A stretch of DNA of 63,739 nt, filler included, from Klebsormidium nitens (lineage: Eukaryota > Plantae > Klebsormidiophyceae), in the NCBI GenBank assembly GCA_000708835.1. It is 5 parts of 5 records of this genome, joined end to end, with 100 filler letters (N's around TTAATTAATTAA, not from the genome) between each part and the next. Parts side by side here need not be neighbours in the genome. Positions count along the whole stretch, not along the records: positions 1 to 22,661 come from DF237890.1; 4 more parts are not named here. One strand, written 5' to 3'. Position 1 is the stretch's first letter, and every line of letters begins with the position of its first letter. A model generated the notes under the pieces. It did not search any database, was not told the DNA's origin, and saw nothing but the letters and a program-made list of their open reading frames with translations. The translations under genes were made by a program, and so were the position numbers. Shown in pieces: positions 26 through 22,661 of the stretch.

Positions 26-3000
26 ATGAGTGACCAGCCACTTGCATTTACATCTGCTGGATCCTTCTTCGTTTCCCTAAGCCTCCGCTCCTTTCGTGCA
101 GGAGCTTCGCTATCGCGCCGTGGGGACATTCCCCGGCAGGGTCGCGCCGAGAGCCAGCTCAAGCCCTGGTACGCAATTGTGCGGGATTTTCTCCAGGAGG
201 GGAAGCCTGTGGCCAACATGAACAGGGGCGAGAAACATCTTCCGCAACGCAGAGAGAGCAGGTCGCCTGCGGCGGACGCAACGAGGCAGGGTCGGAGGGA
301 AAGGAACCGTGATGCCAGAAGAGGAGAGAGGGATCACCGGAGAGAGCGGTCGAGATCCTGCGATTGGGAGGCGAGGCCAGAATATGCCTCTCCTGAACGC
401 GAGAGAAGTCTGCGGGATGAGCCGGACAGGGAGAGGAGGCAGCGGGAGAAGGAGCGTGCGCGTCCACAGAAGAGGAGGTCTCTGTCGAGGGAGAAAAGTG
501 AGAGGCGAGAGGAACGAGGGCGCAATGTGCACACGGAGAAGGAGCAAGGGGGTCACAGAGAGCGCAGGCGTGGGGACGACAAGGGTGTTTCCAAAGGAGG
601 TGAAAAGAGAAGAGGGGACGCGAAAGTAGAGGAGCGGGGCCAGGGCGATCCTATCAGCCCCCTTGTAGAGTTTGATCGTGAGGAACAGGCTTCAGAAGGG
701 AGGGGCGCCAGATCAAAACTCAGTCCGGGATTCCTGCGGAAGGACGGGGGTGAAACTCTGCAAGAGACGGCGGGCAGAAGTGTAGGGAGAAGCTCAGACA
801 AGCCGGAGAGAAGAAAGTCGGGAACAACTGGGGAGAGAAGCTCAGACAGGGCGGGGGGCCGGAGGCAAGAGGGTGGGGGGGAGAAAGATATAAGGAGCGA
901 GAGGAATGTAGAGAGGGGCAAGGGGAGAAGCTCAGACATGTCGGAGAGACAAAAGTCGGTGACAACCTCGGAAAGGGGCTCAGACAGGGCAGGGGGCCGG
1001 GGGCAAGAATCGAGAGGAAAGGAGAGGGAGAGCGAGAGAGGGGGGGTGAAAGAAGGCAGAAGTCAGGATAGCGGGAGGGCTGATAGGCCGAGGTGGACCG
1101 TAGCACTGGAAGAAAACGCGCATGAGGGTTTGAGAAAGTTGCCGGAGGTGAAGAGGGAGGAAAAGAGGACAGGTGAAGTCAGCTGCAGAGATTGCGAACT
1201 TGGAGACGACCGTCGGGGCAGAAGCGGGCGGTCCCCAATCTGGGCGGAGGAACAGCTCCCTGCATCCTCGGAGGCTTTGGAGAGGGAAGCCCGTTTTAAG
1301 GAGAAGCGGAGGAAAGATGCTGCCTATGCGGCGTCTCGCTTGAAGTTGTCCATTGTTGCAGATCTGTGGATGAGGGAAGAGGAGGATGGTATCCTTGAGG
1401 GCCCGCCAGGACGCCGAGGCGACTCAAAGAGCGCTGGAGAACCACACACTCCGAGCAGAGCGTCTGGAGGTGCGCAGGCAGGGGGTCCACATGTTGACTT
1501 TGTCAGGGAGGCTTTCGGAGGGGCCGCGATGGAGCCCTTGCGGGTGAGGGAGGACAGCCCTGCCTCGGTGGAAGCTGTGGACTCTGGCAGTCCCTGGAAG
1601 AGCAGGTCGCGTCCAAAGGTGCTGGCGCCAAAGTCATCTGGGATGGTCACGAAGGGCAACGAGAGGAGGCCTGGCGAATCCCCGGGGATAGCCACAAAGG
1701 GTGGGGAGAGGAGGCCCAGCGATGGCGGGAGCTCAGTGGTCGAGGATGGAAAGCGGACGGCTTCTGCTTTTGGCTTTGGCCAGCAGGAGGGTGGGAGCGC
1801 CAGACAGATCGGCTGCGCTGAGAAGCCTGGGGCTGCCGCTGCTGGAGTAGAGAAGGCGAATGGTAAGACAATTGGCAGCAGAATCGCCGCCGGGGAGGTC
1901 GCCACTCGGGGCCCGAGCAGGGGAGGCGCTGGTCCTGCTGGGAAGGAAGAGGCGCTCAACGGTGCAAACGGGATGCAAGATTTGGACCGGATGGCGGCGC
2001 AGGGAGTTGCGCGTGGGGACGGGGAGAGGGTGGACTTTGGGCGCTCCCTTGGGGTGTCAGCTGGGGCTGTAAAGCGGATGGAGAAGGCAGCGGGCGTGCA
2101 GAGCCCGGCCGCCAGTGTGCAGAGGCTTGCAATGTCAGGCGGAACGGGGGTTGTAGAACTGCTATTGGGCCCAAGTCAGTCGGAAGAGGACTTTCACACC
2201 GTGTTTGAGGAGGCGAGCGGACCGCAAATCAGCACGGCTTTAACAGCGCTTCAAATATATTCTGAGAGTGAGTCTGAGAGTGGAGATGAGGAAGCAGACA
2301 GACCGCTCTTTCAGAGAATGGGAAGCGAAGCGGCTGCGGCATGCCAGGGGGCGGGCGGTACCTTGCAATCGGATGGGGGGGGAAGTCTCTTGAGTGAGAT
2401 TGGGGCCGAAAACTTGGTGAGCCCACCACCGGCTGCCATCTGGGCGGCAGCGGCGGGGGGCGCCGTAGAGGAAGGGGTGGAGCAGGTAGCAGAGGTACGG
2501 GCGGAGCCTGGCAGTGCAGGCGATCAGGAGGAGCCGCTGGGAGATCAGGTAAGCAGTCTGGCATGTACTGCCCGTTCCCTTGGCTCTGTACTTCTGTTTT
2601 TTGGCCGGCCCTTGAGAGCTTCACACTACTTCAATCAACCTAAAAGCGTTTGCTCTAGACAACGTTAGTGCTCAGCGTTCCTGCTTTTGAGCGGATCCGT
2701 CGAATCCAAACAAAACGTCCCTGGAAGGTCCTTCTTGTTGTTCACTGTACTGACGACCTTGGAGGGACACGATGCGGCTGCCAGAAGATCAAAAGGGCTT
2801 TCCAAAGCCCTACCTATTTGTGTCGCTTCTCCCCTGTAATGAGCAGTCCGGCCCATCGAAGTGCCAACTTTGTCTGATCTTGACTGATCGACTGAAGAGT
2901 TTGGGCTCCCATCTCTCTCAGGGACCCCCTGCCAGCAGCAACAGTCAACCCAACGTCCCTGGTCTTGCTACCAAGGGATCGCCAGAGCCCCGCATGCCCC

Positions 3001-6000
3001 CTCTTGAGGATCCCAATACCCCTTCCCCCGTCTTTGCCCCAACCGATACTCGACTCTTTCCCCAGGCAGATAACCCAGTAAGCAGTGTTACCCCAGCGGC
3101 TTCATCGGATAAAACACCGGGGGCTGTGGACACCGGCGTGCTGATGTCAGCGAGCGCGCCGCAGGGTCCAGAGGGAACGGGGATCGAGACGGATGATATC
3201 ACTGGTGTGGCTAACGAGGGGCCAGGGGGGGACTCGGCGGAAGGAAGGCACGCGGTTGGACTGGGGGCGCTTGGTGCAGCTGCTACTGCGCCCCCGGCGG
3301 GAGGGCTCTCAGTCCCTCCTCCTGAGGTCTTGGCAGAGTCTTCCAGTGGACCTGCTGAGGAGCCGGGGGCCAGGAAAATGACAAGCGCAGGAGACCCGTC
3401 CTTCGAGGATGGGGTGGCGGTCGAGGAAGAGCTGCCTGTTTGGCAAGGGCAGCGAAGCGGAGGAGAGCAGCCAAGCGAAGGAGAGCAGCCAAGTGCCCCA
3501 ATAGAACGGCCGACAGCCCTGGACGACGAACCTGCTGACAGTGGTGCGGTGCCTGGGGAAAGGACGCCGGAGGAGGGGTCTTGTCCCGTCTCTGTTACAA
3601 ACCCTGCGGCAGTAGAAGAACAAAGCACAGCAGCCCTTGTCCAATTAGGCCAGGAGCCCAGCATCGGCCAGTGTGAAAGGGGCGGTGTCCAGCGGAGAGA
3701 TGCGCTAACAGCAGAGGAGGAACGAGAGGAATTGCCTGACGCCAGGCAAAAGGGCCCCCCTGAGGCACCGGCACAGGGGGCGCCTGAAGTAGTTGCGGCG
3801 GGGTTAGCCGACGGTGCTCCGGAGGCCTTGGCTGGGACGCCGAAACAGAATTTGGTTCCGCTCCTAGTTGCTAGGCTGCTGCCAAGCCCTACGGAGCTCT
3901 TGTCAGAATCTCTGGGGCCGGTGGGGGGTAATTTGACCGCGCAGGAGAGGCGCGGTCTAGACCTGACGGCGCTGCTTAAGAAGGGGTGGGAGACCGATCG
4001 CTGTCCTGCCCACCCTAAGCTGGTGGCAGCTCGGATCTTTTGCGTGGACTGCTCCGGTGCGGAGGGTCAGGGGATGCCTTGCTGCGCAGCTTGCAGCAAG
4101 GGAGATCACAGAGGCCACTTGGTTTTCGACGTGAGCAATTTAGAATGTCTTTCGTAATGGGCTTGATTGGTTCATCCCTAACGTGATGGTGACGTTCTTG
4201 CTGTTCACTGCACTTTCCTGGTTGAAGCGATGGATACGTTTTGAAACTGGATTGTGGGGGTTCCACATGTTGTGCAATGTTGCTTTCGCTCTTGAAGCAG
4301 CACAAGTTGAGTCCTTCAAAGCTCGGACGAATGAGCACCACTGACAAAGATCGCCCTTCAACCCGTGCAGATCAAATACAAAGACCGTGAGTGGCTGCTG
4401 GTGATGGACAATCGGCGCAACCTGAACGTGTCCGACCTGCCCTGTAAAGTAGTTGGCAGCGCAACCGGGGTGCGGATCTGGCCTCGAGAGTCTGCACGCC
4501 CGTCGTCTGCAGCCCTAACCTGCAAGGCCTGCGGTGGCTTCCTGTCTGCAAGGAGCGAAGAGCAGCTTGTCTTCTGTTCGTTGCAGTGCAAGGTGCGCTC
4601 CGAACACAGCCCGACACGCCTGCTTTTGTGCCCTTCTTTGGCTTTCGAGACTTCAGGCTTCAGACTCCGCCTCTGTTCCAACATGAGCTTGCACTCCATT
4701 TGAGTCCCAGACTGTTGCACACCCCTTTCTATGGCCTAGGCGGACGATGAAGATTGTCACCCCAATCAGACCGTCGAAGCACATTAGTTAGCATGCTACA
4801 ACACAATTAACTTCATTCTGTTGTTGTTGACAAGACTTTTTGAGTGCGCTTGTCCGTTTTCGGATGGACAAACTTCTCTTGTTCTGCCAATCCACAGATT
4901 GGAACTGGATGCTCTTGCAAGTAGTCATGTGCTCACAGGGCTATGAAAAGCTGCGTTCCCACTCACCTCCTGAGAGCATCCCTGTCACTTGTGTCAGCAA
5001 CCCTCGCCGGGATCACGTCAGACAAAGCAAGCGTTCATCTCAGGCCGCTTGTTTCGTTTGCAGATGGCAACCAACCCGAAGGCACTGCTGACCACAAGTG
5101 CGGCCGATTGCCACCTTCCCCAAGCAGAGCAGACGCAGTCAAGTACGCCAGCAGAGGAGGAAGCCACAGAGTCCAGAACGGCAGCTGGCAGGAACGGGGC
5201 GGGTCACATTGTCGCAGACGGAGGCGTGGACGCTGCTGAATTGGCTGACGCTCTCAACATCGCCGATGACGTCAGTGAAAGAGTTGCTTCGGAGGCCCCG
5301 GCGAGGGCAGCTGATACCCGGACGGACAAGGGGGCCTCTGCTGCGCGCTCACTTAGCCCGTCGGACGCCGATTGGCTGGATACGGTGCTGGAGAAGGGGT
5401 GGGAGAAACCGTGTCGTGAGCATGCGGGGGGCAAGCGGCTGTTCTGCATTGACTGCGCGCACAAACCAGGCTACGAGCGCCCAGTCTGCGCTCAGTGCGT
5501 CAAGAAGGAGCATGAGGGACACAGGGTTGTGAATGTAAGGTCTCCGGTGGATTTGTATTGTACGTGAGAGTGTAGAGCCGTGCTGCCACGCCTAAGGTTT
5601 GGCCTTGCACTGGCTTGGCACTTTTTGACAGCTACTCAGGTCCAACTCAAACAGCATTTGTTAATTCAGTTCCAAATGCAAAGACTTCTCTGAGCATAAG
5701 CGTGCGTTTGAAATGCTCCGAATGCTAACCACGCAAAGTCTCCTGCAGCTGTCCCCTGGCCATTGGTCCGCCGACTACTGGCTGCTAATGGACGGCGTGC
5801 ACGACCTCGACGTGTCCAACGTCGCCAGACGGAAGACAAACAATGCAGCAGAGAACTCGAGCGGAGCGGTGATCTGGCCGCGGGAATCCGAGCCCAAGAA
5901 CCAGACCTGTTTCAAGTGCAAAGGCTGCCGTCGCCTGGCCATGGCGCGCGGGTGCGTTCAGAAGAAGGAGCCGGAATTCTGCTCGGTACTCTGCAAGGTG

Positions 6001-9000
6001 CGCGAGTTCAGCGAGACAATGTTGAGCCCCACTGCTGTTCTTACATAACGTAGCATGACAGTGGCTTGTGCTTGAAGCTGGCATAGTGCTTATAGCGGTT
6101 GAAACAGGTTGGGCAACAGGCATGTGCTGCTTGTAGGCCAACTTTACAAGGATACTTTCTCTTACTAGCGATCGGCCTCGGTTGAGTCGCTCTGTCTTTT
6201 GACGCATGTACCTTTTGGAAGCTTGGGTGCAAGAGTTGTTGGCCGCAGTGCTTTTGAGAAGCATTTTTCTGTTCTGGTACATCAACTTTTTATAGAAAAT
6301 GGCATCTGCCGGCCTCCGGCCCACGTTCAAGTGACGTCTTTTCTGGCTGAGTGTTTCAGTCTGACTCGTTGACGTCTTCTTCAGGTTCGAGCAGTCCCCA
6401 ACATGATCCGGAAAACCAGTGTGGACGACTGTCGTCCCCAGCAAACAGGCATAAAGCAGCCAACCGCGCCTCTGAAGCGGAAGGTGCTGTCTGCCGCAGC
6501 GGGTAGACCGGATCCGCCGACAGCTGTCAGGGGTAGAGCAGGACATGTACTGGCCGGAACGCCGGCGCCTGCCGCAGCGCTGCCACCTTGTGCCGATGAC
6601 AAAACGGGTACGACGGGCGAGTCTCGCACGACTGGTCTGAACGGCGAATTTGGCCGGCTTTCAGCCAGGGCGGATTCAGAAGGGGCGGTCGGCGCTCTTG
6701 TGAAGGAATCAGCAGATGCGCCCGGGGAAGGGATAGCGGATGGCGTCGAGGAGACCGCCGATGGAGCGGCTGTTGAGCGGACAGCGATCGCAACCGCTGC
6801 TGAAACGGATGGAACCCCATGTACCAACGCGTCGGCAGAGGGGGCTGTTTCTGCAGCTGTTCCGGCCCCCCGAGAACGATACTGGGGCCCTGCGTGGCTG
6901 GAAGCGGTGCTCGAAAAGGGGTGGGAAGAGCCGTGCGACAAACACCCCCAGCCGAAGCGTTTTTTTTGTGTGGACTGCGCTGGTTTGCGAGGATGCGAGC
7001 GGCCGGTCTCCGCGGGCTGCTTCGACAAGAAGCACAAGGAGCACAACACGATAGAGGTAAGGGCCACGTTACTAAAATGTTAAGGCGATGCGGGTCTGCC
7101 GACATCCTTACTGCTATATGGTCTAATGCCTAGGCAATCCGTCTGCTTGCAGTCGTATCCACACTCCGTCCTTCTGATGGGTTGACGAAAGCTGTGGCGA
7201 AACCTGTCAATCAGAAGCTGATGCACCAGCTGTATGCTTCGAATGACAGTGAACCCATTGAAAGGACGGAGTATGGATCTCACCGGAACCCGAAGTCGCC
7301 GGTTTTCAGAAACTTAGATTGAGGCCATTGATTCGGCTGGAGCAGTGCTTGATGCTCGTACCTCCGTATCCTCGATACCTGACTCCCAAACCCCAGCTTT
7401 TCTGCAGTTGAGAATTAGAGATGGTGTCTGGCGTCTGGTGGACACAGGCCTTGGGGAGATGGAGGTTTCCGACCTTCCCAGACGAAAGCTGCCGGAGGGG
7501 CCTTACGGGGTCCCGATCTGGGCGGTACAGTCCTCGAAAAGGACGACAAGCGTCGTCCTCTGTCAAGGCTGCTTCGGTCCAGCCAGCTTTCGGAACGACC
7601 CAGCGCGCACCTTCTGTTCGCTCGAGTGCAAGGTCTGTCGTGTCCTCTTTTCCTTCTTCTCGTTTGTGGACAACCTGAGAATTGCATCGTGTCGCTGCTC
7701 TTTGGGCACGTTGCCGAGGGCAGTGAGGCCTTCTGCATCGAGCAAATCCGTGGAGCGGCAAATCCGTCCTGCAACGGTTTCAATCTTGTGCACAAGGCGG
7801 ACTCTCGATGCTTTCCGAATTGGGACTTTCCTGCTCGTTTCTCCTGGTGAAGCTGTTGATATCTGATTTGAGTCGTCGATCTGGTTGTCGTCCGCAGGTT
7901 CTCTCTTGAGGCGGTGCTTTACTTTCCCTTCTTTTGCTTCAGTCTGCTTTGCTCTCGCTCCGCAATTTCTTCGCAAGACCTGCGCGTACATCCAACACCA
8001 CATATGCCACCCACCTGCCAATTTCGATCCGCAATGTAAGGTCCGAGATCTTGCGGTCCTGTGAGTCGGACCTCTTCATCAAACATCCCGATGCAATCCC
8101 GGTAGAACGCCTGGCGTGGTACTCAAAGCTGTGGAGAAAAGTGTAGAAAAGGTTCATTCAGTTTACAGAGGCTTATGTGGTAACATAAAAGTGTGGTACT
8201 CACACCAATAAATACATCCTCGTTTCTCGCGTGTCTAATCATTGATCAGCAAACTGCCTGAATACCCGTACCCTTAGTCCCACACCTGCTTGATAGTTTC
8301 GGCTTTCCTTTCCAACAGGCCCGCACGGACCCCAAGTCAGTGCGCCCCACCAGCACCGACCCCTCGCCTGGTCCGCCAGCAGAGTCGGAAGCGCCGACTG
8401 AGCTCCCGATGGAGGTTGCTGGAGAGATAGAAGGCCTTCGAGCAGTTGGCTTCAAGTCTATCAACGCTCTTGACTTGAGGGGCGAGGAGGCTGACGGCCT
8501 CACAGGACGGACTTGGCGCAAAGCCAGTCTCGCCACGGACGGTGCTCGAACGGTCGCGGAACAGGGAGTAGATTGCAGCGGGGGGGAGCAGCTGGAGGCG
8601 GCCGCCCTGCTGGAGGACCCCCCGACTGCGGACCGAGGTGACGAACCTAGGACCGGCGACGTCATCTTGGCGCAAGAAACGACGGCTGTGGCAGCAGAGA
8701 AGCAGACGACGGGAGGGCATGCAGAACGCCGGGAGACGGAGAACGGAGATGGGGACATGGAGACGCCGGAAGGGCTAGCTGAGGCTGCCCCGAGAGGGAC
8801 CGCCGAGAGGCCAATGAAGGCGGCCGTGGATTCTTCTGCCGCGGCAAGAGAAGGCGGGGGTGGGGCCGCTGAAGAGACGGTCGCTCTGTTGGCGACCGCA
8901 GGAGATGCTCCGGGCCAGAGTGCAGGCAGTGCGAGTGGGGCGGAGGAAAACGATGGGCTTGCAACGAGGGAAGCCGTCCCGCCTGGAAGTCTAGGAGTTT

Positions 9001-12000
9001 CGGGGGCCGGGTTAAGCAACGCAGCTGTCACGACGGTGCCTCATCCGCCTCTAGAGGGGACGGAAAAGCTACCTGCGAGCACAGGAGCGCCTGGCGAAGC
9101 GATGGCGATGTCCGATTGGCCGGTAGAGGGGACAGCGGATGGGGGAGAAGAGGCGGCGAGAAGTGAAGTGGGAGAGAAAGTTGTTGACGGTGTCGGGGAG
9201 GGGCTGGGGCCTGTGCCTGCGGCGGGAGGAGGGACGGGGAGCGGAGGCGCGGAAGGTACGCTGGCAGAAGGGGGCAGCGACGCAGCTGTGCAGAACGTTG
9301 ACGACGCCCCCTTTACGGTTGAGGACGCTACGGAGACAGTACTCACCGCCAGCGAAGAAAGGGGCCGGATTCTTGAGGGAGGTGAGGGTCAAGTTTACAA
9401 GAGCGAGAAATCAGCCGATGGATTGGAAGAGAGAGCCGACGGGGTAGCAGGGGGGATGGCTCGGGCGCCTGGAGAGGGGGCTGCAGAAGTTACGGCTGCT
9501 GACGCTGGCGCGTCCGCCGAGAAGGTCGCCGAGGGGGATCCCTCTGCTGATGCAGCTGCTACGGAGATCCCTGCAGCAGGCCCGCGGCGCCACTGGGGCC
9601 CCGACTGGCTGGAGACGGTGTTTGAGAAGGGGTGGGCGAAGCCGTGTTCGACGCACAAGTATGGCAAGCTGGTGTTTTGCCTTGACTGCGCCGGCACGAC
9701 CCAGCAGACCCGCCCGACGTGCGCCGGTTGCTTGAGAGGGGATCATCAAGGCCACGAATTAGTAGAGGTACGGAGTTGTGGGGGTCTTCTGATCTGCTTT
9801 TGTGTTCTGGAGCCTGCTTATATCTCCTGGCCTCGCAAATCCTGCCAGAATTTTGAGCACCGCAGTCTTCTGGGCGTTAAGTCAGCTGCTCGCCGTAAAT
9901 TAAGGAGGAGACGGACGACATTATGGAGCCGTGCCGTGTCCCTTCTACGGCATATCTAAGTCTGCGCTTCATCCCCTTGCTTTCACAGCTCACAATTCTA
10001 AGCACAGCTACCAAGAAACTCAGGGAGTGGACCCAGAGTTTTAAGAAGCGGAGAATCCAAGAACCCACAAGTCAAATCACCCGAACACCTGCAAATCACC
10101 TCGATCTGTTGCAGCTTGAAAGAACAGACTCCCAAGTGCACGTTCAGAGCCTTTTTGCATCGCAAACTTAGAAACCCTGATTGCGCAGATGCGAGTCCAA
10201 GACCAGGTCTGGATGCTGGTCGACGGCACACACGACTTGGACGTCTCCAGAATCTACGCAAAGAAGGGATCGGGCTGGAGCGGGATGCCCATCTGGCCGC
10301 GCCACTTCCAGACGCGGCAAACTGGCAACCTCTGCCTGTGCTATGGCTGCGGCGTACAGTGGCCGTTCAGGGGCGGCGAGGTGCCGGCGTTCTGCTCGGT
10401 GCTGTGCAAGGTGCGTCAGAAATGGTCTTGCCCAGGCGTGCACCCGGTCACTAGAGTTTGAAGTTAGCAGCTAGCTTTGCAGTTGGATTGGTTTCTTTTT
10501 ATGGTTAGAATACATTTCCATACACCAAAACATTTCCGCTTCAGAAGCATCTACGCAGCCAAGAAATATGCTCTTTACTTTGCTACGTTTTCAAGCAGCG
10601 CAAGAGCTGGTTAATTCATCCACAGAAGATTTCAGGCCGACTTCAAAAACCGTCTTACTTTGTTGATGCTTGTGTTGACAAGTGTCTGTACGGAGTCCCG
10701 CATTTCTTGAAAAGTGGCAGAGACGTTGCGAGCTCTTGATGCTTTGCTCTGAGCCAAAAGAGTCTGCTCAGAAACTTGCAGAACAGACATTTTGATGGCT
10801 TTGTTAAGACATTGGCGAGGTGCTCCACTGACAGACTCTGGTGAAGTGTGTTTTGTCGCGCTTCTAGTGCCACTTGTAGCCTTCATTTGGCAACCTGCCT
10901 TACCCTCCGTAGTCTTTGACGTGTCTTTCTCCTTTCAGGCCCGAACCAACCCCCACTCAGTCTCGACGTACGAGTACCGGGCTCAACAGATTGAAGCAAC
11001 GGATAGACGCGTGGCAGCCGGCCGGATAGCCGCTTGTGCTCCGCTGGGCATAAGTGATCCCCTCGTGGACCTGGACACAGGCCCTGAGGAAACGGGAGCT
11101 CAGAGAGCAAAGGCTCGAAAACCAGCGACGGAGGACGCGGAGTTGAGCCCCGGAAGATCGGGCGTAGAGGAACCGGGTACCGAAAGGCCGGGCGTTGAAG
11201 AACCAGGGACTGCCCGCTGTGCAGAAGGCGCGTCACATAAGGGGCCGCTGTCGCGTGACCGGGACGGAAAGAAGCGGGAAGAGGGGATTGACGACGGCGC
11301 AAGGGCAAAGGGGGTGGAGAGTGCGGCGACATCCGAAGGAAGGGTTGATGCTGCGGCAGCAAAGCGGGCGCTCGTTGGATTCCGAGTCGGCCGGGAGCTG
11401 CCACGTGGCACGATCGTGCTCATCACCGTGGGGCCGAAGCGCATGAAAAATGTCCCCGGCTTCCACAAAAAGCAGGGAGTTGTGATCGAGGCGCAAGCTG
11501 ACGGGACCCATAAAGTGGTGAGGCGCAGGGCTTGCCTCTCCTGACAGCCTAAGTTCGGCATATCTAGAAGTGTAGGTGGCCACGGGTGGAAAGGTTCAGA
11601 GTTTTGAACCCGAGAAAGCGCCCACGTTGTAGAAGTGAAACACTGGCTACGTTCTATAGGCAGGGGGAGTAGTCATCTCGGGTGCTCCGGCAGTTTGCAA
11701 ACCGTTGACCGGATCTGCTTTGAAGCAAGCCAAGGTCGAAAGCTCTTTGTCTGTACAGACGGAGAAGGTTGCACCAAGGACTTGGAGTGCTTGCGTCTCG
11801 TTTGAGCGCTGCTTTCTACAGGCTAAAGTACCGGGTCAAAAGTGTCAGAGTGCTTTTAGCATCACTTTCTGAATGCTTAACGACCATCGTTCTTGTTTTG
11901 CCCGCAGTTCCGTGGAAAGGCGGTCTGCAAGTGGAACCGGAGTTTTCAACGGAGTGAGCTCCAAGTCATGGGCATTCCAAAGGGCCATCACCTTCGCGCA

Positions 12001-15000
12001 AAGGATTTTGAGAAGGGGTCATGGGACGGAAAGATGACTGCCGAAGAGATCACGAACGGGGCCGGCCTCTTAGACGCAGACGGCCGTAGTTTCTACAAAC
12101 TGCGCAAGACTCTCGTGTCGGCTGGGGAGAAGGAGAAAGCAGGAGTGGAGGGGAGTGACGCGAGCAGATGGGGAGATGACATCAGTGAGGGCGGCGTGGT
12201 TCTGGGCAAGAGGAGACAGAGCGGCTCGGCAGGAGAGTCGCACGACGATGAGGGGGGGAGGAAGATGAGCTTGAAGAAAGTCATGGAAGCATCGGACGCG
12301 TCGAAGAAGAAGCCGCGGGGCGGGGCCGCGAACAGCGCGCAGGAGGCAGCTTTGAAGAAACCTGCTCCAAAAGCTTCGGAAAGGAGGGTGTCTCGAGAGC
12401 TTTTGTGCATTGTCGGCGATGTTGATCTGGTTGCTAGGGAGGAAAGGCGGGCAACGAGAGCGAGAGCAAAAGATCCCCAACCCGCTGTCGGCACGGGGCG
12501 CAGGGGAACGGGGGGAAAGCGGAAGCTGGACAGAGCGGTCGAAGCGCCCAAGGAGAAGAAGGCGAGAAGTGCGGGGGATAATGAAGGCGACGAGCAGGCC
12601 AAAGGAGGAGCAGAGACACCAAACCGAGAAAGCGGTGCGCTGAAGCTGTTCACGGGGGGCATGACGGAGCTTGCGGCTCTCCTAGCGAACCTCGGCAACG
12701 AGGGCATCGGTCTCGGTCTCGATGCGCATGCCGTTCTGGCGGGTGCGGCGGATGTCGTCAGCGCGAGCGCGGCTGCTGACGTCAGCGGGAGCGCGGCACT
12801 AGCGCAGACCGTAGCACCACCGGCCGAGGCTGCGTCGCAAGGGGGGGCCGAACCGGGAACGACGGTGGTTGACTTGGATCAAGACGAGCCATCTTCAGAA
12901 GATGCGACCCCCAAGAAGAGACAACGGAGAAGCGCGCCAGCAGCGTACCCGCTCCTAAGCGATGGCGTGCAACTTTTGGATCGGTCGAGCAAGCGGGCGG
13001 CTGCAACCAAGGCCTGCCAGAAGATCAAGCAGAATCTGATCCGAGAGCGGATCCCGATAACCGACGACGGGGAGCAGGTGCCTCAGGAGAAGGCCGAGCC
13101 AGTCCCTCAGGCAGCGGCAAAAGCTCTGGCCGTCCCGAACCGGGAGACCGAACCCCACGGTTTAAAGGCGCCCCGCCCACCTACGGCGCCGCCAGCGGGG
13201 CTGTGCTGGCTCGGAAGTGGGCGGGTGGCCCCAACTGGGGGGTCGCTACCAGGGCAAATGCAGGCCCCCGCGAGTGCTCACCCTGCAACTTCGAGCATCG
13301 GGCACTGGGCACCTTTTAAACTTGGGGACCCAGTGGCCGATCAGTTTGCGTCGCAAATCCTAGCCACCAGCTTCCGAGCGTCCCGCAATGCCTCCAGGGA
13401 CCCATCGGACAGACTAATTATCTTCAGGACTGAGACAAGCCTCGTCGTCGGCGGCCGCGTGACTGCGGCAGGGGCTATACTCCTGGATCAATGGGGCTTG
13501 CAGCTGCATCGGATGGGTTTTCCTGGCGTCGTCGTGGATCGATCTGCAAAGACGGTGGTCAGTCTGCTCCCCGTTCCAGTGCCTTTTCCCGGAGCGCCCA
13601 TAGCCAGCGTATTCTCACCCGCAGTCCAAAAGGGTGCCACTGCGGAGCTCCAAGCCCGAGGGTCAGCCGCCCCTGCAACCGAAGTGCCGCCACTCATCCC
13701 GAGCCGACAAACGAGCGACCAAGAACCCGTTCTCGGCCCCGGGGCAATGCGGAATGGAGCTCCGAGCGTTCCGACATCAGTTGCGCAGCCTGTGACTGCC
13801 CAACCGCCTCCCCCGGAGCGCATCCCAACTCCAAGTCCGAGAGCGGGATCGATCCCCCCTGAGGAAGGGGTCGGTCCAAAGGGCAAGAGACAGAGCGCCG
13901 CGACAGTTGCGTGCCTGGCACTAGGGACTCCAAGGGAATGGAAGCGCCAGAGGCGGGCGGAGGAGGAGTGTAGCCCTGCCGCGGAGGGCTCCGAGGTGCG
14001 CTCAGAAGATCTGAGTGAGGCTGCCGAATTGGAGCGACACGAGGCAGAGGGGACCGGTGGCCCCGTCCCGTCGGATCCGGTCCTGGTGTCCCCCCCGCCT
14101 GCGGATTCGACGGAGCTGCCGGATTCGAAAGAGTCGCAGCTAGGGATGGGGCCGCTGGGAATCGAAGCCGTGCCGATTCCTCTGGAGGAGCCGCATGTGA
14201 GGCCCAAGAGAAATGCGCGCGTCGAGACCTCGAAATTGGCAGCCCCGCCGGCGGCAGCTCGGTACGCTGTCATACGTACGCGGCCCGCGAAAGGGGGCCC
14301 GTTCGCCACTGAGAAGATCATCGCGGCCCCGGACGCGGGGGTCCACGAATCCCTGGGTGAAAAGCAGTCAGGCCCGCCAGCCCAAGAACAGACTCGTCAA
14401 GGCGAAGTGGGGGATCCCCCAGAGACTGGCCCGCCGACGATGCCAGTGACGAAGCGAAAGGGTAGGCCGCCCAAGAAGAAGCTCGACGAGGCCGTGGCGG
14501 CGCCCGCCGCTGACGTCACCGGCGGCGCTGACGTCAGCAAGGGCCACTCCAGCGGCGCTGATGTCGGCAAGGGGGCCGCAACACCCGCTGCCCACACCCC
14601 CCAGAAGAAGAGGTCCCAAGGGGGCAAGCGGCCGCAGGAGAAGGCGGCGGGGGCGGCAGGCGCGGCGGCCGCTGACGTTGGGGTCACGCATGCTGACGTC
14701 AGCATGACGGAAGCAGCGGCTGTTGCAGCGCCCCTAGTGGTTCCGAAGGCGGCAAAAGGGGGCAAGGGGAGGGGTCTGCAGCAGCAGCAGGCGGGCCGGA
14801 GCATGAGCGCCGTTGCGGGGGGGGCAGCTCACAATGCCATCGTTCCCAGGGGGGCAGTTTCTGCGGTGGGAGAGGGGGGGGCGGCGAGCAACGGGGCTGC
14901 GAACGGGAAGAAGCTGGTAGTGGCAGGGGGCCGGCGCGTGGTGAACCTGCCAGCGTTTCTGCTGGACTCGTCGGATGAGGAGAGTGACGATGAAGAGGAA

Positions 15001-15913
15001 GAAGAGGAGGACCATGGGCCTCCGGAGGAAGTGAGTGGTCATACTACTGATTTGTAGGGTTTGCAAGTCCAGAATAAAGGTTTACAAGCCCGTATGAGGC
15101 TTTTCGCTGCGTTTCCCATCTACAATGGTCGGCCTGCTGGTAACACTCGCTGGATTCTGTCTGCAATGGCTAGTCTTTCGATACTCCGACTCGTTGATTG
15201 CTTCTGTGAAGAACAGGACGATTAGGAGACCGAAGACTAGTGCTAAGTAGAGGGCGCTAGAAACGGTGCCCCAATCTCCTTTCGTCAAGATTGACTCTCT
15301 CAGGCGAGTGTTGTCGTTTCGTGTGCAGCTGATGGCCATGTGCAAGCTCTTCGACGAAGTTCGCACCGATTACAAAAAGGTTAGTTCATCATTCTGCGAT
15401 GTCTGCTGGATTCCAATTTCATTATGCAGCGCCTTGTGGTCTTGCCTGCGGCACCTGAGTATCTCTTGACTTCTTCTGCAACTGCAAAAGTGATGACAGG
15501 CGCTGGACAACAAAGTGATCAAATGAAACAAACATTGATCAAATACTTTGCCATGAATATACAAAGTTTCTGGAAGGATTCTCCGCTCAAATCGGGATGC
15601 AAGCTCTTTGGGGAACGAAGGGTAATGAGAGTAGAAGCTGTCACATGTTGGACTTGTGCACGCCTCGTTTCTTGCAAATGGTTTGATGGATCTTTTTTCC
15701 GTGCCACGTCCAACTCTCTTTGATATTTCGTAACAGGTCCGCGAAGCCATCTTCTACCTGCACTACCTCAAGGGCGTGACGATGACCAAGGACCTGCTGG
15801 CCAGCTCGCAAGTGGACGTCCGAGTGCGCGCCCTCATGGCTCACGCCCATGCGGGCGTCCGCAACCAAGCCCAGAAGCTCGGGCAGCAGTGGGAGCCGTT
15901 GAGGAGAGCATGA
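26..15913 (+). CDS. Giant multi-exon protein (~3,700 aa): four PLATZ domains, KOW/SH3-like module, AT-hook, C-terminal TFIIS-N (TND/LW) domain. Exons ~26(or 102)-2548, 2922-4130, 4371-4592, 5064-5534, 5749-5997, 6385-7056, 7408-7632, 8319-9767, 10189-10410, 10939-11517, 11908-15030, 15329-15379, 15737-15913
   Basis: All 12 introns are GT..AG and phase 0, and join the listed ORF segments in frame (e.g. CAG|GTAAGC 2549, TCTCAG|GGA 2922, GAA|GTGAGT 15031). A likely acceptor at 100-101 means the gene may start upstream of the window. Confidence 0.75.
3960..4592 (+). other. PLATZ domain 1 (two exons)
   Basis: CPAH..CVDC..CAAC..HRGH then CKAC..FCSLQCK matches the PLATZ C-x2-H/C-x2-C/C-x2-C/H-x2-H plus C-x2-C/C-x3-C pattern. 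Confidence 0.85.
5373..5997 (+). other. PLATZ domain 2
   Basis: WLDTVLEKGWEKPCREH..FCIDC..CAQC..HEGH, then LDVSNV..CKGC..FCSVLCK. Confidence 0.85.
6892..7632 (+). other. PLATZ domain 3 (one Cys replaced, SAGC)
   Basis: WLEAVLEKGWEEPCDKH..FCVDC..SAGC..HKEH, then CQGC..FCSLECK. Confidence 0.8.
9606..10410 (+). other. PLATZ domain 4
   Basis: WLETVFEKGWAKPCSTH..FCLDC..CAGC..HQGH, then LDVSRI..CYGC..FCSVLCK. Confidence 0.85.
14452..14481 (+). other. AT-hook-like motif KRKGRPPKKK in the PLATZ gene
   Basis: GRP core flanked by basic residues. Confidence 0.55.
15329..15913 (+). other. TFIIS N-terminal (TND/LW)-like domain in the last two exons of the PLATZ gene
   Basis: AIFYLHYLKGVTMTKDLLASSQVDVRVRALMAHAHAGVRNQAQKLGQQW fits the L..L..L...T.+LL.....V..L..H....V...A..L...W pattern. 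Confidence 0.65.
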
Positions 15914-17243
15914 CGTGTGCCACGTCACTTGTAAGTATCCTGGGGCCTAGCCTAGCTGTATGTTTGATAAGCGGATGATTAAGTTGTGAGGTCGACAGTA
16001 GTTTACTGCTTTAGTAAGTTCAGACTGCAAGACGGTGCCTATATTTCAATAGGTTTGAGCTATAAGCTGCCGGACGCAAGTACAGCGAGGATATCCTTTT
16101 CGTCCCTCGATTTTTTTGCGCAATGTAAGATGATCAATCCAATCACCGAAGCGCACCGTCGTTATACATCTGTGACGGCCAGGCTGCTCGCGCAGTATGC
16201 ATGAGAAACTATCATTTGAATAGATCCAGATGGCCCGCGCCTTTATATAAAGACTGCGCGAAGAACTCTCGGTTCCATGCAATTTGTGTACACGCGTGTG
16301 GAATGCACCGCTACGTATATGGCTGCATATGCGCATAAACTGCGCGACGGCCAAAATTGTCGCACACATTGTGGGCAGTCAAGCGTGCAAATCTCCAAGG
16401 CCGCATGGCCCCATGGAGCAACGTACCTGCGGTGCGCTCATTTATAACATGCATAACGCAGGACGATGCTTCCATTGTTACGAACATCCATGTTCTTAGT
16501 GGCACATTGTAGGGAGCATTGCATGAGCTGAGCAGATGTCAACTTTAGGATCGAGGCGCAGACTACAAAATGCTACATACAACCCCTTTTGGGATTCGGC
16601 ACACTGAGAGATTTTGGCCTCAATCACAATGAGCTGAGGACAACGGAGGTTCCAGAATTGTTGTCGGGATACATCAAGTGAGTATGATGATATAGATGCC
16701 CAATCCAAGGTGCCGAAGTAGAGTGTTCCTGCACGAGGCGCAACCAATCAGAAGCTGAACGCTTGCTTCTGAACATTCCGCCTTTCATATGCGCTCATTA
16801 CGACGTCGTGACCTTGCAGGCAAACCAAAATCATGTCTATTTCCACTTGATAAGGTCAAGCAGAAATTGAAGAGACGATGCCACTCAACGACAGCTACAG
16901 CTTTCCCAGCGGATACTTGATGAAGCTTGCGGGATGCCTGAGCAACTTGCCGCTGACTCTAGTTAGCGTTAGGTTCTGCCGTTGTACTTACCGGCTTCAT
17001 TCCAGCGGCTAACGTGTCGCCAAAGAGCTCCCAGGCCTTGCGAGAGCCGTCGAACGGAAGCCGTACTAAAAAGTGGGCCCCTCTGCACATGACACGTCAG
17101 CAGCGAACTAAGCGTCCGAGAACGTCCAGCGACCTTGGAGCGGCAACGAGATAGTTCGTTCCACTGGCCTCAGAGTGTAAGATCTCACAGGAGGACTTTG
17201 TCCGACTTGCTACTGTGAGGGTGAAAAGGGCTGCGCGGCTCAC

Positions 17244-20241
17244 CGTCGTTCCCAAACGCATCGTCGTCGTCCCCATACAACTCGTCGTCCTCGAACTGAT
17301 AGCCCTGCACGGGAGCACATGACTGCGATGAGAAGTAGCCACTGAAAACGGAGATACTTGCAGAATCTCCCAAGCTGGTTGGATGCACCCTTTGAGAGCC
17401 GGCAGCAAGGCTTTCAGCAGCAAGAAGGACCTTAGCTAGATTTCAAAACTCTAAGAAACGTTTAGAAAAGTTCTGACGGTACAGAGCCTCTGCTTTGTTG
17501 TTTGTTCAGGGAGTGCCGGTGAAACGACTGCTGCCAGCAGCGAGAGGGTTCGTTCTGCAGCGATCCCAGTAAACCGGTCTGCTGCAAAGCGAGAGGCTCA
17601 TCTTAAGGAAGAAGTTGACACGGAAAAGGGGGGGTGCTTTCATACCTGTTCATAGTCTCCCTCGCCCATCTCGTCCTCCTCATCGAGCGCCTCCTCCTCG
17701 TCCTCTTCCCCGCCCTCGCCTTCCTTCGGCTTTTCCTGCACCAAAGAATAAACGACAACGTCAGCGCTTCTCACGGACCGTTGTCACAATTCTCGTGATC
17801 CCAATGTAGTGCGGCTGCGGGGAAAAGAGGGTGCATAGAGCAAGCGGAAGGAGAGAGTGCATTGACCGTACCAAATCCTCGGGACAAAACTCGAGATCAG
17901 AAGGCGAGGACACCCCGAAACTGTCACCGCTCAGACAAGTGACCTCTGGTGTCATTGAACGTCATATCGTAGTGGAAGAGCGGTCCGCACCGAAGTGGTT
18001 CTCCAAGACTGACGGAGAAAAAGATTCTCAGAACAGTCATTTACTTTCGCGCCCCCCCAGGTGTTGAGCACGAAGCTCGTGGTTGATGCAAAGAGCTTTG
18101 TTCCAAAACGGCAGAGTCTCATACGGTAAAGAGACCTATAAACATTCGCTGACTCTTTTCAATAACTTCAAGGAACTAAAAGCGACTCAGTCGTCCCAGC
18201 ATCTGGGCAGGTGTCTCAAGATCTGGGTCGACGTCAGCAAGGCTCAGTCAGAAAGGGGTCCCCTGGGCGTCACTTACAGTGGCTTTATCCCCATTCGCCT
18301 CGATCTTCTGCTCGAGGTTTGCAAGGCGCTCCAGCCTTTGTATGTCTGCGATGACAATTGACAGTGGGTTTGTGTTCAAGACACGTCTCATGGCAGATGG
18401 GCAACTGACTACTTTGCGACAGATCTTACAGCATCTGCCCTGATAATAGGGATCTTAGAGAGGGCAGCCTCACTAGGACAAACATAAGTGCATTCGCGTG
18501 GTGAAAGCGAGCGTCTTGCATGCGTAAAGTCGTTTCCAACACGAGCTTTGACCTTAACTGAGAACTCATTGAAAACAAACGTGAAGGCTGCCAGGATTCA
18601 ATAAGGACAATGAAACTAAAGTTTGAAAAGCAGTCGAAGGCAAACCTGTGGTTGCTAAAGGAGCCGATTTCCAGGGGGCGCTTGCCGCCGTTGCTTGCGC
18701 GGCCCCTCCGCCCCGCCCTTTTCCTTTCTCTGCAAAGGATGAAAAAAGTGGTGACGCCCGGATTTTGGTGCCAGAGACTCCTAATGATACATGCGACACC
18801 TGTTGACACTTCATTTTGACAAGCAGAAGAAGGCAAATAAAATCAGCCAAAGAACCACTCTGATCCAGCAACATGTTGGGAATACCTGGAGAAGAATAAG
18901 GTTCTTAGAAAACACCCGTGGCAAGCTTGCAGGGTCACGTGGGTGGAAATTTGACACCATCCCAGACTTGCCCGGAATGCCTACCTGGCCCCAATAGCTC
19001 GGCTGGAAAGTGTTTTGGTGTCAACTTCAGGACCGAGGATAGGGGCGCTCGGATGGCGTGCGGGTTTCGTCGGTACCGATCAGCGTACCTCTCTATCTCT
19101 GCAGCTAAGCCCACTGCAAAAAAAGCAGAAGCACAATGTGTTCAAAATAAAGATTATCGTTCTAGGTGCCCACATAAGGGTGCATAGAGGACCATTGAGA
19201 TTACTAAAATGAGCCGCAAGTACTGTTGTAAGGACCAGGCTTTGAAAGTGTACCTCAGACTGCAAGACTTGCAGCCCCACTGTTATCCCTTTCTGATGGA
19301 AGTGGTCTTGGAGGAGCTCTGATCGATCTGACATTGGCAAGTGGAATTTTTGGCATGTGGGCTGTTGTAATATGGGCTATCCCTGGACACTCGGCCACAC
19401 CCACCTGTCCCGCTTTCACGTTCCTCGATGTGGGCTGTTCCCGGAAAACCTCAAGTGGCATAAACTCCAGACAAGAGACATGCGGAGGCATGATTGCTCT
19501 GAATTTCTCATGTGGGCTGTTTCCAAAAGCTCAAGCAAGACAAATAAAGGCATACCTGTTTTGCTTTTTGGTTTCTCGATGTGGTAGGGCGAGTACAGCC
19601 AAGCGCTTTCGAGGCGCCTCCGCCGGTTCAGCAGCTCTTCTTCCTCGTCTCCAATTTCAGGGACTTCGGGCAGGTTCTCGATGGGCTGTCAAGAGACGCA
19701 CATCATCATCTGCTAGTCACCTTGACACAGATTATTTTCCTCGTTCGATGCTAAACACAATGTTGTCGCAGGCAGTGTGACGTTCGAAGACTGCAGGCCT
19801 TCCGAATGGTTGGAAACAGCTTTCAGGAAACAACCATTTGCTTGATGAGCTCGCTTTCTCAAACACTTGGAACAAGCTAGCGATAGAGCAGGGAGGCACT
19901 TTCTGAAAGGGCAGCGCCACGCGATGAAAAGCAAGTGGTGGTGCGGAAGCAGTGGGCAGCATTGCTCTACGCTGTGATCAGACGTGGATGAAAAACAAAA
20001 GTCCGATCAGTGGAGCGCCAGGCACTGGCCAAAACCAACTATTGATCTCAAACGACGGCAGCTCACGAAAATTATCCACACCATCATTTCATCAAGCAAA
20101 GGGGAGCTCCGGTCTGCGACTCACCGGGAACAGTGGCGGCGGCCCGCTCAGCTTGTCTGGCAGGACCATGTTCCCGTCATCGTCTCGTATCACAAAACCA
20201 CTCCCTCTGCCCCACCCACGACCCCGCCCGCGCCCGGCCAT
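17244..20241 (-). CDS. RPC7: RNA polymerase III subunit RPC7/C31 (POLR3G-like). Exons 20125-20241, 19556-19685, 18985-19098, 18646-18729, 18278-18345, 17646-17735, 17244-17304; last exon unresolved
   Basis: MAGRGRGRG..GPPPLFP|PIENLPEVP..LESAWLYSPYHI..EIERYADRY..HFPAELL..LERLANLEQK, then an acidic tail with DYEQGYQFEDD. All splice phases are consistent. Confidence 0.85.
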
Positions 20242-21625
20242 GCTTTCACCACCTTGTGGGGCGCAAGTGCTGCTATGGTTATTCTACAGGACAGAGACCC
20301 ACACGCGGAAAGGAGTATTGGAAGAGACTTTATTGGAGTATTTGTTCAATCGGCTATGTGGGCGGAGAATGCAGACTGCAATGCGTTTGACCTCGTCTAT
20401 GTAATTTGTGGCATGTGCCTTGAGCAGAATGGTGGCTATATGATAGGCTTGATTTGAGAAGCTGCCATGGATTTGGCGGGAGCTGTTAAGCTTATGGTTA
20501 GCACCCCTGCTTTTCAACCCCACTCCCTTCGTCGAACTTTGAACCCCAAGATCAAACAGGGGAACGTTCGACGATCAAAAAGTCAGAATGTCAGAATGTT
20601 AACCGAGCAATTCAGCAAGCATCCTCGAATTCAAAGCTTGAATTTGAAGTGAGCTGAGAAAGCTGCTTGAAAGAAGACGCACCTCATCAGGAAGGCTACA
20701 GGCTACTGGCGCAATGTTCCGCTATTTGTGAACCCTCTGTGCATTTTCTAAAGAGGTTTGACTGTGCAAGTTTCTTTTGATGTGCGCCAGAAAAGGGTTG
20801 CGCTTTCGAAGGCCAATGTCAACTGAAGAAGTGGAGCTGCTTTGAGGCCAGCCTCTGAAATGGACTCAGGTGAGTTTGTTCATCAACTTTTCCACCGCAC
20901 TTCTGATGTTGGCACCAACCTCAGTGGGTATGAATGTGGGGGTTACAATTCTGCAAAAGAGCTTCTGCTTTGCTCTGTCCTCAAATGGCAGTATGCTAGC
21001 CAATGCAAGGCTGTAATCTGGCTTGGCATGGTCTCCATTGCTACCTAGGAGGCTTGACAAGGGTCATTGCGGTGCTGAGCAGTATTCTAGCAGCCTAGAG
21101 ACAGAACATGTGATCTAAACCCATTTGATATCATCCCAGCTTTCCCTTCTATACAATGCACATGTGGTACTTTGCAATTGGTGCAACCAGTCAAGTGCTT
21201 TGTGTGAACGTTCTCAGCTTGTGCATGCCCAGAATGCAGTGGAAGCAGGATGAAATGTGGGGCGGTTCAAAGCAGGTGGTCTAAACCATAGCCCCTTTGA
21301 GTCTGCATACAATCAACCTTTCGTCATTTCATGCTTTCTTGCCCCCACGAATGATCATTCTGGTTTCCTAGACACCGGCATCTTCTTTCTTTTAGACCCA
21401 TCTTCAGAAGTGCCCACTTGAAGGTTCATCGTTACAAGCCTCTTCCCAATCAGTCTTGACTTCTTAGGCAAGTACGCTGACTGCTTCTACCCTACTTCCA
21501 CTTTCTTCCACTTCCCTTGTTTTCGTTTCTAAAACCACTTCTGTCGTTCACTGCAGCACGACCAACTGACCACGAAGGAAGGGGGTGGCCGGTCCCCCCT
21601 CAAGCAGTCCCCCCGCTACAAAACG

Positions 21626-22661
21626 ATGCGCTCGCTCTCAGATAACCAGTGCAGCGAGTGCAAGCAAAAGTGGAGCTCTCGCTGGTACCCCTGGAGGAGG
21701 CGTCCCGCCTCCTGTGCACCGCTTGCTACGACAACGAGCGGAACGCCAGCCGCTACCCCGCCAAGTCATGCGAGGCATGCGGCAAAGAGTCCAGTTCGCG
21801 GTGGCACCCAGGGGCCAACCCCGATGCAAAGCTGTGCCACGCGTGCTATGGTAAGAAGCAGAAGAAGGAACCCCCGCTCAAAGTAGATATGGTTGAGGAG
21901 GACGGCAAAACCGTAGGGTACGCGCGCCCCAACCCCCTGTCGGCCGTCAGAAGATCTGCGGCGGCAGTGCGCGCTTCAGTAAACGAGGTGCAAGACGCCG
22001 CGGAAGCTCTGGGCATCTCTTCGGGGGCTGCAAACCTTTTGGGGGGGTCAGGAGAGGCTGAGGAGCCTGAGGCGCCAGGACCCCCTAGTGAAGATGCGGG
22101 CACTTTTCCAGGGGCTTCGAACCTTTTGGTGGGGGCGGATGAGGCTGCTGGTGATGGAACGACGGAGCCCCCCGGTGATGCGGCTACGTTGCTGGCATTG
22201 CCCACTTTGGGGGACCAATCGGTAACAGCGCCTCAGGGGGTGCAAGAGATGGCGGGGGGAGTGGAGAAAGCAGGGGAGGGAGAATTGCAGAAAGAAGCGG
22301 ACCTGATCATTCTGGGAGACTCGAGCCCGGCAGCTGGCCGGGCAACAGAGCCCGCCGTGGGTGTACTGGAACTGGCAGGAAAGCGCCAGACTCGGCAAAG
22401 CAGTCAGGGGGAGGCTGGGGGAGCGTCACCAAGGACTAGGGCGAAGCCCTCGGCTTCGGCAGGCGGAAAGCGGTCGCTGAGATCCTCAATGGAGGGTGCG
22501 GCGGAAGCATCGGCAGAGGAGGACGGGCCCAAGAGAAAGCGCTCGCTTCGGGAGATCCATCAGGGGTCTCCAAAGCGTGCGCCGCCAAAGGTCCCCGCTG
22601 TAACGGCACGACTGCGCACCGACTTCTGGCTGCGCGCCAAACTTGCGGCCGCGCATCGTCC
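21626..22661 (+). CDS. Protein with two tandem GATA-like zinc fingers (C-x2-C-x18-C-x2-C); 1-nt frameshift in the first finger; 3' end lost in the gap
   Basis: CEAC-GKESSSRWHPGANPDAKL-CHAC is intact. CSEC-KQKWSSRWYPLEEASRLL-CTAC is restored by adding one C at CCCC 21688-21691. Confidence 0.65.

Follow-up and report, generated by a model that had tools for sequence, protein, structure and literature searches.

We analysed a 63,739-nucleotide stretch of DNA (the window, filler included) from the streptophyte alga Klebsormidium nitens and describe here the gene KFL_009410010, which lies on the + strand of DF237890.1, a scaffold of 22,661 nt that makes up window positions 1-22661 in its entirety. 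On our reading, this is likely to be one large, intron-bearing nuclear gene with a mostly disordered, multi-module product that would act as a DNA-tethered transcription adaptor or scaffold. Sequence comparison makes it very likely that a single gene, and not four, spans the four Cys/His-rich units of this locus, and we are confident, short of certainty, that these units are divergent PLATZ-fold modules, homologous to PLATZ proteins and yet not members of the family by the curated Pfam threshold. Small PLATZ proteins are zinc-dependent binders of A/T-rich DNA, and the plant PLATZ transcription factors include pea PLATZ1, maize Floury3, and rice GL6. To our knowledge, PLATZ is viewed as a small, single-module, plant-specific type of protein, with its structure and its DNA-binding mode unsolved. 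The gene model is already in GenBank, unnamed and with a faint B-box hit alone, while its architecture was previously undescribed: in KFL_009410010 a known module takes on a new architecture, one kept in related algae, and neither this gene nor any multi-PLATZ protein is mentioned in the literature that we searched.

The G+C content of the scaffold is ~0.58-0.68 up to roughly position 15,000 and ~0.50 from there on, and its + strand carries long open stretches interleaved with short stretches of G+C 0.45-0.51. Before the annotation was consulted, GT-AG sites together with intron phase and open frames had sufficed to derive the first ten of the twelve introns (2549 to 11907), and these agree with the GenBank model (GAQ92185.1, "hypothetical protein KFL_009410010, partial"; 3,697 amino acids [aa] at 102..15913 of DF237890.1). 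Mapping GAQ92185.1 back onto the DNA gave 13 exons and 12 introns, all of phase 0, as the original prediction had proposed for the introns that join the units in one frame. An exact look-up of the open reading frame (ORF) at 26-2665 returned no match. The exons are as follows.

Exon 1 of the retained part, 102..2548 (protein maps from 104), +: disordered region rich in R/E/K/S; acceptor TGCAG|G at 101/102
Exon 2, 2922..4130, +: acidic/Pro-rich linker, then unit 1 N-part at 3957-4130 (B-box-like; zf-B_box 24-25.7 bits)
Exon 3, 4371..4592, +: unit 1 C-part, PLATZ-like, ending in FCSLQCK; PF04640 20.3 bits
Exon 4, 5064..5534, +: linker and unit 2 N-part (5370-5534)
Exon 5, 5749..5997, +: unit 2 C-part; 71% identity to unit 2 of the relative L001 (below)
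Exon 6, 6385..7056, +: linker and unit 3 N-part (6892-7056); Ser at the fifth ligand position
Exon 7, 7408..7632, +: unit 3 C-part; PF04640 13.4 bits
Exon 8, 8319..9767, +: long acidic Ala/Gly-rich linker and unit 4 N-part (9603-9767); 14 of 14 indels multiples of three
Exon 9, 10189..10410, +: unit 4 C-part
Exon 10, 10939..11517, +: ARTNP motif at the start, first half of the most conserved island at the end (11395-11517)
Exon 11, 11908..15030, +: second half of the island (11908-12144), long disordered region, AT-hook-like motif (14452-14481), acidic patch
Exon 12, 15329..15379, +: beginning of the TFIIS-N (Med26/TND)-like domain
Exon 13, 15737..15913 (protein to 15910), +: remainder of the TFIIS-N-like domain and stop codon

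The modules and their probable kinship with PLATZ proteins

In translation, the four Cys/His-rich units occupy ~3957-4592, 5370-5997, 6892-7632, and 9603-10410 of the + strand, and a phase-0 intron interrupts each of them at the identical position, dividing it into an N-part (pattern '...WL..VLEKGW..PC..H......FC.DC..........P.C..C....H..H....'; copies at 3957-4130, 5370-5534, 6892-7056, and 9603-9767) and a C-part (pattern '..W.L......L.VS.......G..IWP.......C..C.............FCS..CK'; copies at 4371-4592, 5749-5997, 7408-7632, and 10189-10410). The four copies share 33-40% pairwise identity, with 14 invariant columns in the N-part and 15 in the C-part, and a profile of the four C-parts matched the annotated protein over 4 stretches with E = 1e-127, which puts homology among the units far beyond chance. 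The ligand spacing is C-x2-H-x7/10-C-x2-C-x10-C-x2-C-x4-H-x2-H, then C-x2-C-x14-17-C-x3-C, and the metal ligands fall in the invariant columns except for the fifth ligand of unit 3, which is Ser in K. nitens and Cys in the other units and in unit 3 of the relative described below; a neighboring Cys (GCERPVS) might substitute for it. What had been described as four complete PLATZ Cys/His patterns are indeed four homologous units, but unit 3 lacks one canonical Cys.

Searching 1.84 billion representative proteins with the C-part profile gave five matches, namely GAQ92185.1 itself and four ORFs from Logan assemblies of relatives, and a word search with the four-unit profile returned only two ORFs of one and the same contig, even at E ≤ 10. 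This contig, L001 (27 kb, genomic, Logan SRR23617307), runs colinear with aa 7-3696 of the K. nitens protein and holds five units, the extra "unit 0" (L001 6518-6685 and 7187-7417) lying upstream of the unit 1 counterpart, where K. nitens has an uninterrupted linker. The C-parts of units 1-4 pair one-to-one between the two organisms at 49, 71, 60, and 70% identity, compared with 30-41% between paralogs. This one-to-one orthology implies that the array is old and, most simply, K. nitens would have lost a unit. A search for multi-PLATZ architectures in other algae, which had been put forward as a check on the original prediction, did uncover a five-unit orthologue. In two further short contigs from other runs, L003 1-1835 (SRR14092360, duplicate SRR14092359) and L005 1-1581 (SRR23617210), an N-part and a C-part are again followed by an acidic linker exon, of which the first stretch is present, so the architecture is common to several related taxa.

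For spliced stretches, the Pfam scores given here refer to parts of GAQ92185.1, and the exons of L001 were searched one by one; the gathering scores are 25 bits for PF04640 (PLATZ), 24.1 bits for PF00643 (zf-B_box), and 20.6 bits for PF08711. PF00643 was passed by the whole protein (41.6 bits over 3 stretches) and by unit 1 alone (25.7 bits), with units 2-4 at 16-19 bits each. PF04640 scored 20.3 bits in unit 1 (E 8.9e-4, covering 11-79 of the 79 profile positions; 19.9 or 18 bits for other fragments), 13.4 bits in unit 3, and 10.7 bits in the whole protein, and across 11 C-parts, drawn from four sources, it was the sole Pfam family to recur (in 5 of them, best E 0.0012). When the language-model (ESM) features were searched, PLATZ clusters came out on top (0.91, 189 shared features). 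We then turned to an AlphaFold (AF2) model of unit 2 from a 16-row alignment, with a predicted local distance difference test (pLDDT) score of 82.3 and a predicted template-modeling (pTM) score of 0.77; a 4-row version (pLDDT 54) was left unused. The best ESM-Atlas matches of this model include a cluster whose members bear PF04640 in 98% of cases, on which it superposes with a TM score of 0.64 over 135 of 154 residues at a root-mean-square deviation of 3.5 Å, both sides being predicted models. A second streptophyte cluster, unnamed, reached TM 0.67, and unrelated B-box-only proteins stayed at or below 0.35. In the PDB, Foldseek and VIA-align found only partial matches to B-box, UBR, or ZZ fingers and no solved structure with this fold, and the C-terminal finger gave a weak match to the FCS finger of PHC1 (2l8e, E 0.035, ~35 residues).

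The order of the ligands, C,H,C,C,C,C,H,H followed by C,C,C,C, is the PLATZ order in all four units (the fifth being Ser in unit 3), whereas the spacings depart from the published consensus, C-X2-H-X11-C-X2-C-X(4-5)-C-X2-C-X(3-7)-H-X2-H and C-X2-C-X(10-11)-C-X3-C (PMC11768212). Like PLATZ proteins, the units consist of an N-terminal B-box-like finger and then a PLATZ region ending in C-x2-C...FCS-x2-C, and they belong to the streptophyte lineage. Canonical PLATZ proteins, however, have one module in ~200-350 aa (PMC9262033), while here there are four modules (five in the relative) in at least 3,697 aa, accompanied by long disordered linkers, an AT-hook-like motif, a TND-like end, and the altered ligand spacings. 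B-box proteins (PF00643; TRIM, plant BBX) resemble the units in that the K. nitens N-parts match the B-box model, but they lack the beta-rich segment and the FCS-like finger that follow in the units. FCS fingers (Polyhomeotic/PHC1, MYM type, plant FCS-like), which bind nucleic acid, resemble the C-terminal finger, C-x2-C ... F-C-S-x2-C, but this match is weak and covers only ~35 residues of the unit. Taken together, the proposed PLATZ identity is supported as distant kinship or a shared fold (TM 0.64, features 0.91, sub-threshold Pfam scores) but not as an assignment by the PLATZ hidden Markov model, whose cutoff none of the units reaches.

Probable continuity of the gene, and its 5′ end

The comparison with L001 also bears on whether the units belong to one gene. 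Each of the 12 introns has a counterpart in L001 with its position and phase unchanged; the exon 1 donor (cag|GTAAGC at 2549) is preserved there too, and so are the two small terminal exons. Within the units, the L001 donors, located after H-x2-H-x4, read GTGAGC, GTAAGC, GTAAAG, GTAAGT, and GTAAGC, and those directly after 'CK' read AAR|GTGAGC, GTACAC, GTGCGT, GTGCGT, and, in one case, GCACGT. This last one is the 'CK' donor of unit 3 (L001 11900-11912, AAG|GCACGT), possibly of a GC-AG intron, with GT elsewhere. The pyrimidine-rich CAG acceptors before the linker exons are kept in L001 as well. Right after the acceptor downstream of each K. nitens unit, we observed an xRTNPKSV-like motif (MATNPKAL, VRAVPNMI, ARTDPKSV, and ARTNPHSV), and the presence of a related motif after every unit indicates that the linker exons are homologous continuations of the units and not first exons. 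No linker exon other than exon 4 opens with ATG (5064), and L001 has TTC (Phe) in place of that codon; nor does L001 share the first in-frame Met codon of exon 4, 8, or 10.

Between K. nitens and L001, the exons show 68-78% nucleotide identity, with 46 of 50 indels being multiples of three, an excess of third-position change, and a ratio of nonsynonymous to synonymous divergence (dN/dS) of 0.25-0.58. The spacers between and within units, instead, are 47-59% identical, only 11 of their 59 indels are multiples of three, and no constraint was seen in them. The inter-unit spacers measure 387-686 nt, within the size range of the internal introns, and the intergenic region downstream extends over several kb; separate genes would each require an unconserved and unseen 5′ exon within these short spacers. 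The idea of one protein of ~3,700 aa thus finds good support in the comparison and coincides with the GenBank model, but the length is understated, with 5′ exons lying beyond the scaffold. One may also speculate that, were the intron downstream of a unit retained, shorter isoforms with one, two, or three units could result.

The missing exons came to light at the 5′ edge, where the gene had been thought to start at position 26. The ATG at 26 is directly preceded by a TGA (23-25), and 26-101 aligns poorly to L001, with out-of-frame indels, while beyond the acceptor TGCAG|G at 101/102 the identity rises above 90%. The ATG at 26 was rejected as the start codon on account of both the non-conservation of 26-101 and the conserved acceptor, and this part of the original prediction falls: the gene runs off the 5′ edge of the scaffold. 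The conserved acceptor, which would end an additional intron of phase 1, implies one or more 5′ exons upstream of the scaffold and a protein of more than 3,697 aa, and no confident counterpart of such exons was identified in L001. Consequently, 3,697 aa and 13 exons are lower bounds for KFL_009410010, the 5′ end of which lies beyond the scaffold.

The remaining regions of the protein and its proposed role

Outside the units, the product of exon 1 is rich in R/E/K/S (19% K+R, 17% D+E), and the linkers are acidic and rich in Ala, Gly, Ser, Pro, and Thr, with 13-17% hydrophobic residues. The long disordered linkers of the original prediction are borne out by this composition, which combines few hydrophobic residues with abundant A/G/E/S/P/T. 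Conservation with L001 peaks in an intron-split island at aa 2541-2660 (11395-11517 and 11908-12144), with 37 of 40 residues identical in its core; queried as aa 2520-2680, this island had no match among Pfam families, PDB sequences, or the named clusters of the Atlas. Further downstream, the AT-hook-like sequence KRKGRPPKKK (14452-14481), with a G-R-P core and basic flanks, has the counterpart KKRIGRPPKRK in L001, as judged by motif match. The last 78 residues align to positions 3-48 or 3-49 of the 52-position profile PF08711 (TFIIS helical-bundle/Med26), the score being 19.2 bits for K. nitens and 20.4 bits for L001. All seven PDB sequence matches of this C-terminal domain are TFIIS-N domains (TFIIS, TCEA1, Elongin A), aligned end-to-end at E 0.05-0.7, and exon 13, which is TFIIS-N-like, is the most constrained exon (dN/dS 0.25). 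From these sequence matches, the C-terminal domain is probably a TFIIS-N (TND) domain. It resembles TND proteins such as TFIIS, Elongin A, IWS1, and Med26 in its near-cutoff match to PF08711, and differs from them in that it is C-terminal and combined with PLATZ-like modules.

The order of these parts suggests how the protein may work. An N-terminal region rich in R/E/K/S would be followed by four B-box plus PLATZ-fold zinc modules on acidic disordered linkers, then by the conserved island, a disordered tail with the AT-hook-like motif and an acidic patch, and finally the C-terminal TND/Med26-like helical domain. By analogy with small PLATZ proteins, the four modules and the AT-hook may together afford multivalent, low-specificity binding of A/T-rich DNA through avidity. 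TFIIS-N type domains are docking sites for transcription factors, and the TND of KFL_009410010 would accordingly be expected to dock those that bear TND-interacting motifs, so that the protein as a whole might serve as a DNA-tethered adaptor or scaffold for the transcription machinery. A nuclear role linked to nucleic acids is plausible from the conserved AT-hook-like motif and the probable TFIIS-N domain, while the function as a chromatin scaffold that had been suggested at the outset is speculation. A more specific proposal, in which a giant protein restricted to the Klebsormidiophyceae uses its 4-5 PLATZ-fold modules and the AT-hook as a multivalent clamp on A/T-rich DNA and its TND to recruit elongation or Pol III factors, appears to us rather unlikely. 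In cereals, PLATZ proteins reportedly interact with RPC53 and TFC1, two RNA polymerase III components (PMC11768212).

Seen in an early-diverging streptophyte alga, a conserved array of 4-5 PLATZ-fold modules would mean that such a module is usable as a repeat unit, and the array supplies divergent module sequences for structural work. Moreover, the physical joining of PLATZ-like modules to a TFIIS-N docking domain suggests how A/T-rich DNA could be connected to the transcription machinery. Were the clamp proposal true, KFL_009410010 would exemplify a novel architecture for a transcription or chromatin scaffold, made from a module otherwise known only as a small single-domain factor. The locus also shows that censuses of the PLATZ family by Pfam cutoff overlook members of this kind.

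Alternative readings and neighboring genes

Several observations weigh against the reading as a single PLATZ-like adaptor gene. The gathering score of PF04640 is reached by no unit, and units 2 and 4 have no match to this family at all; the C-part profile retrieved not one canonical PLATZ protein among the 1.84 billion representatives; the TND match is just under the PF08711 cutoff; GAQ92185.1 is an automatic prediction, flagged as partial; and a junction-spanning piece of it (aa 1200-1560) matched no transcript-derived protein. The first two of these, with the ligand spacings unlike the published consensus, the weak PHC1 FCS match (E 0.035), and a word search equally devoid of canonical PLATZ proteins, would fit a single gene whose modules arose by independent pairing of a B-box-type finger and an FCS-like finger and are not PLATZ homologues. 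We consider this improbable, given that a full unit of 150 residues superposes on the PLATZ cluster (TM 0.64 over 135 residues, vs at most 0.35 for B-box-only proteins), that PLATZ clusters lead the feature search, that no family other than PF04640 recurs, its profile being aligned over almost the entire length, and that the order of B-box and then PLATZ region is the same.

The modules could also belong to a tandem array of at least four separate small PLATZ-like genes that a gene predictor fused, along with unrelated flanking genes, into a chimeric model. Such an array would suit the small size of canonical PLATZ proteins (~200-350 aa; PMC9262033), the ATG that opens exon 4 (5064), the in-frame Met codons close to where exons 6 and 8 begin, and the stop codons met within 16-77 codons on reading through past each 'CK'. 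However, coding conservation extends up to strong acceptors while the start codons are unconserved (ATG 5064 being TTC in L001), the CK|GT donors and phase-0 acceptors are kept at every join in both species, the spacers of just 387-686 nt are as unconstrained as internal introns, and the same post-acceptor motif lies downstream of all four units, which together make separate genes very improbable. More improbable still is a decaying or unexpressed relic from which no functional protein is made. The protein is indeed very long, evolves fast (dN/dS up to 0.58), and is largely of low complexity, one ligand Cys is gone from unit 3, and one unit of the relative is absent from K. nitens, but more than 11 kb of open frame persist in two species at a synonymous divergence (dS) of 0.35-0.99, with in-frame indels, dN/dS below 1 for every exon, and all splice sites kept, so we regard such decay as a barely credible explanation. 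Hence, we retain the reading of one gene with divergent PLATZ-fold modules.

Two further genes were observed on the scaffold. At 20860-22661 (+), a gene truncated by the scaffold end (351 aa present) has a weak match to a GATA zinc finger (18 bits, below the cutoff). The annotated gene that adjoins KFL_009410010, at 17066-20241 (−), carries PF11705 (RNA polymerase III subunit Rpc31), and its adjacency to a gene with four PLATZ-like units is probably due to chance.

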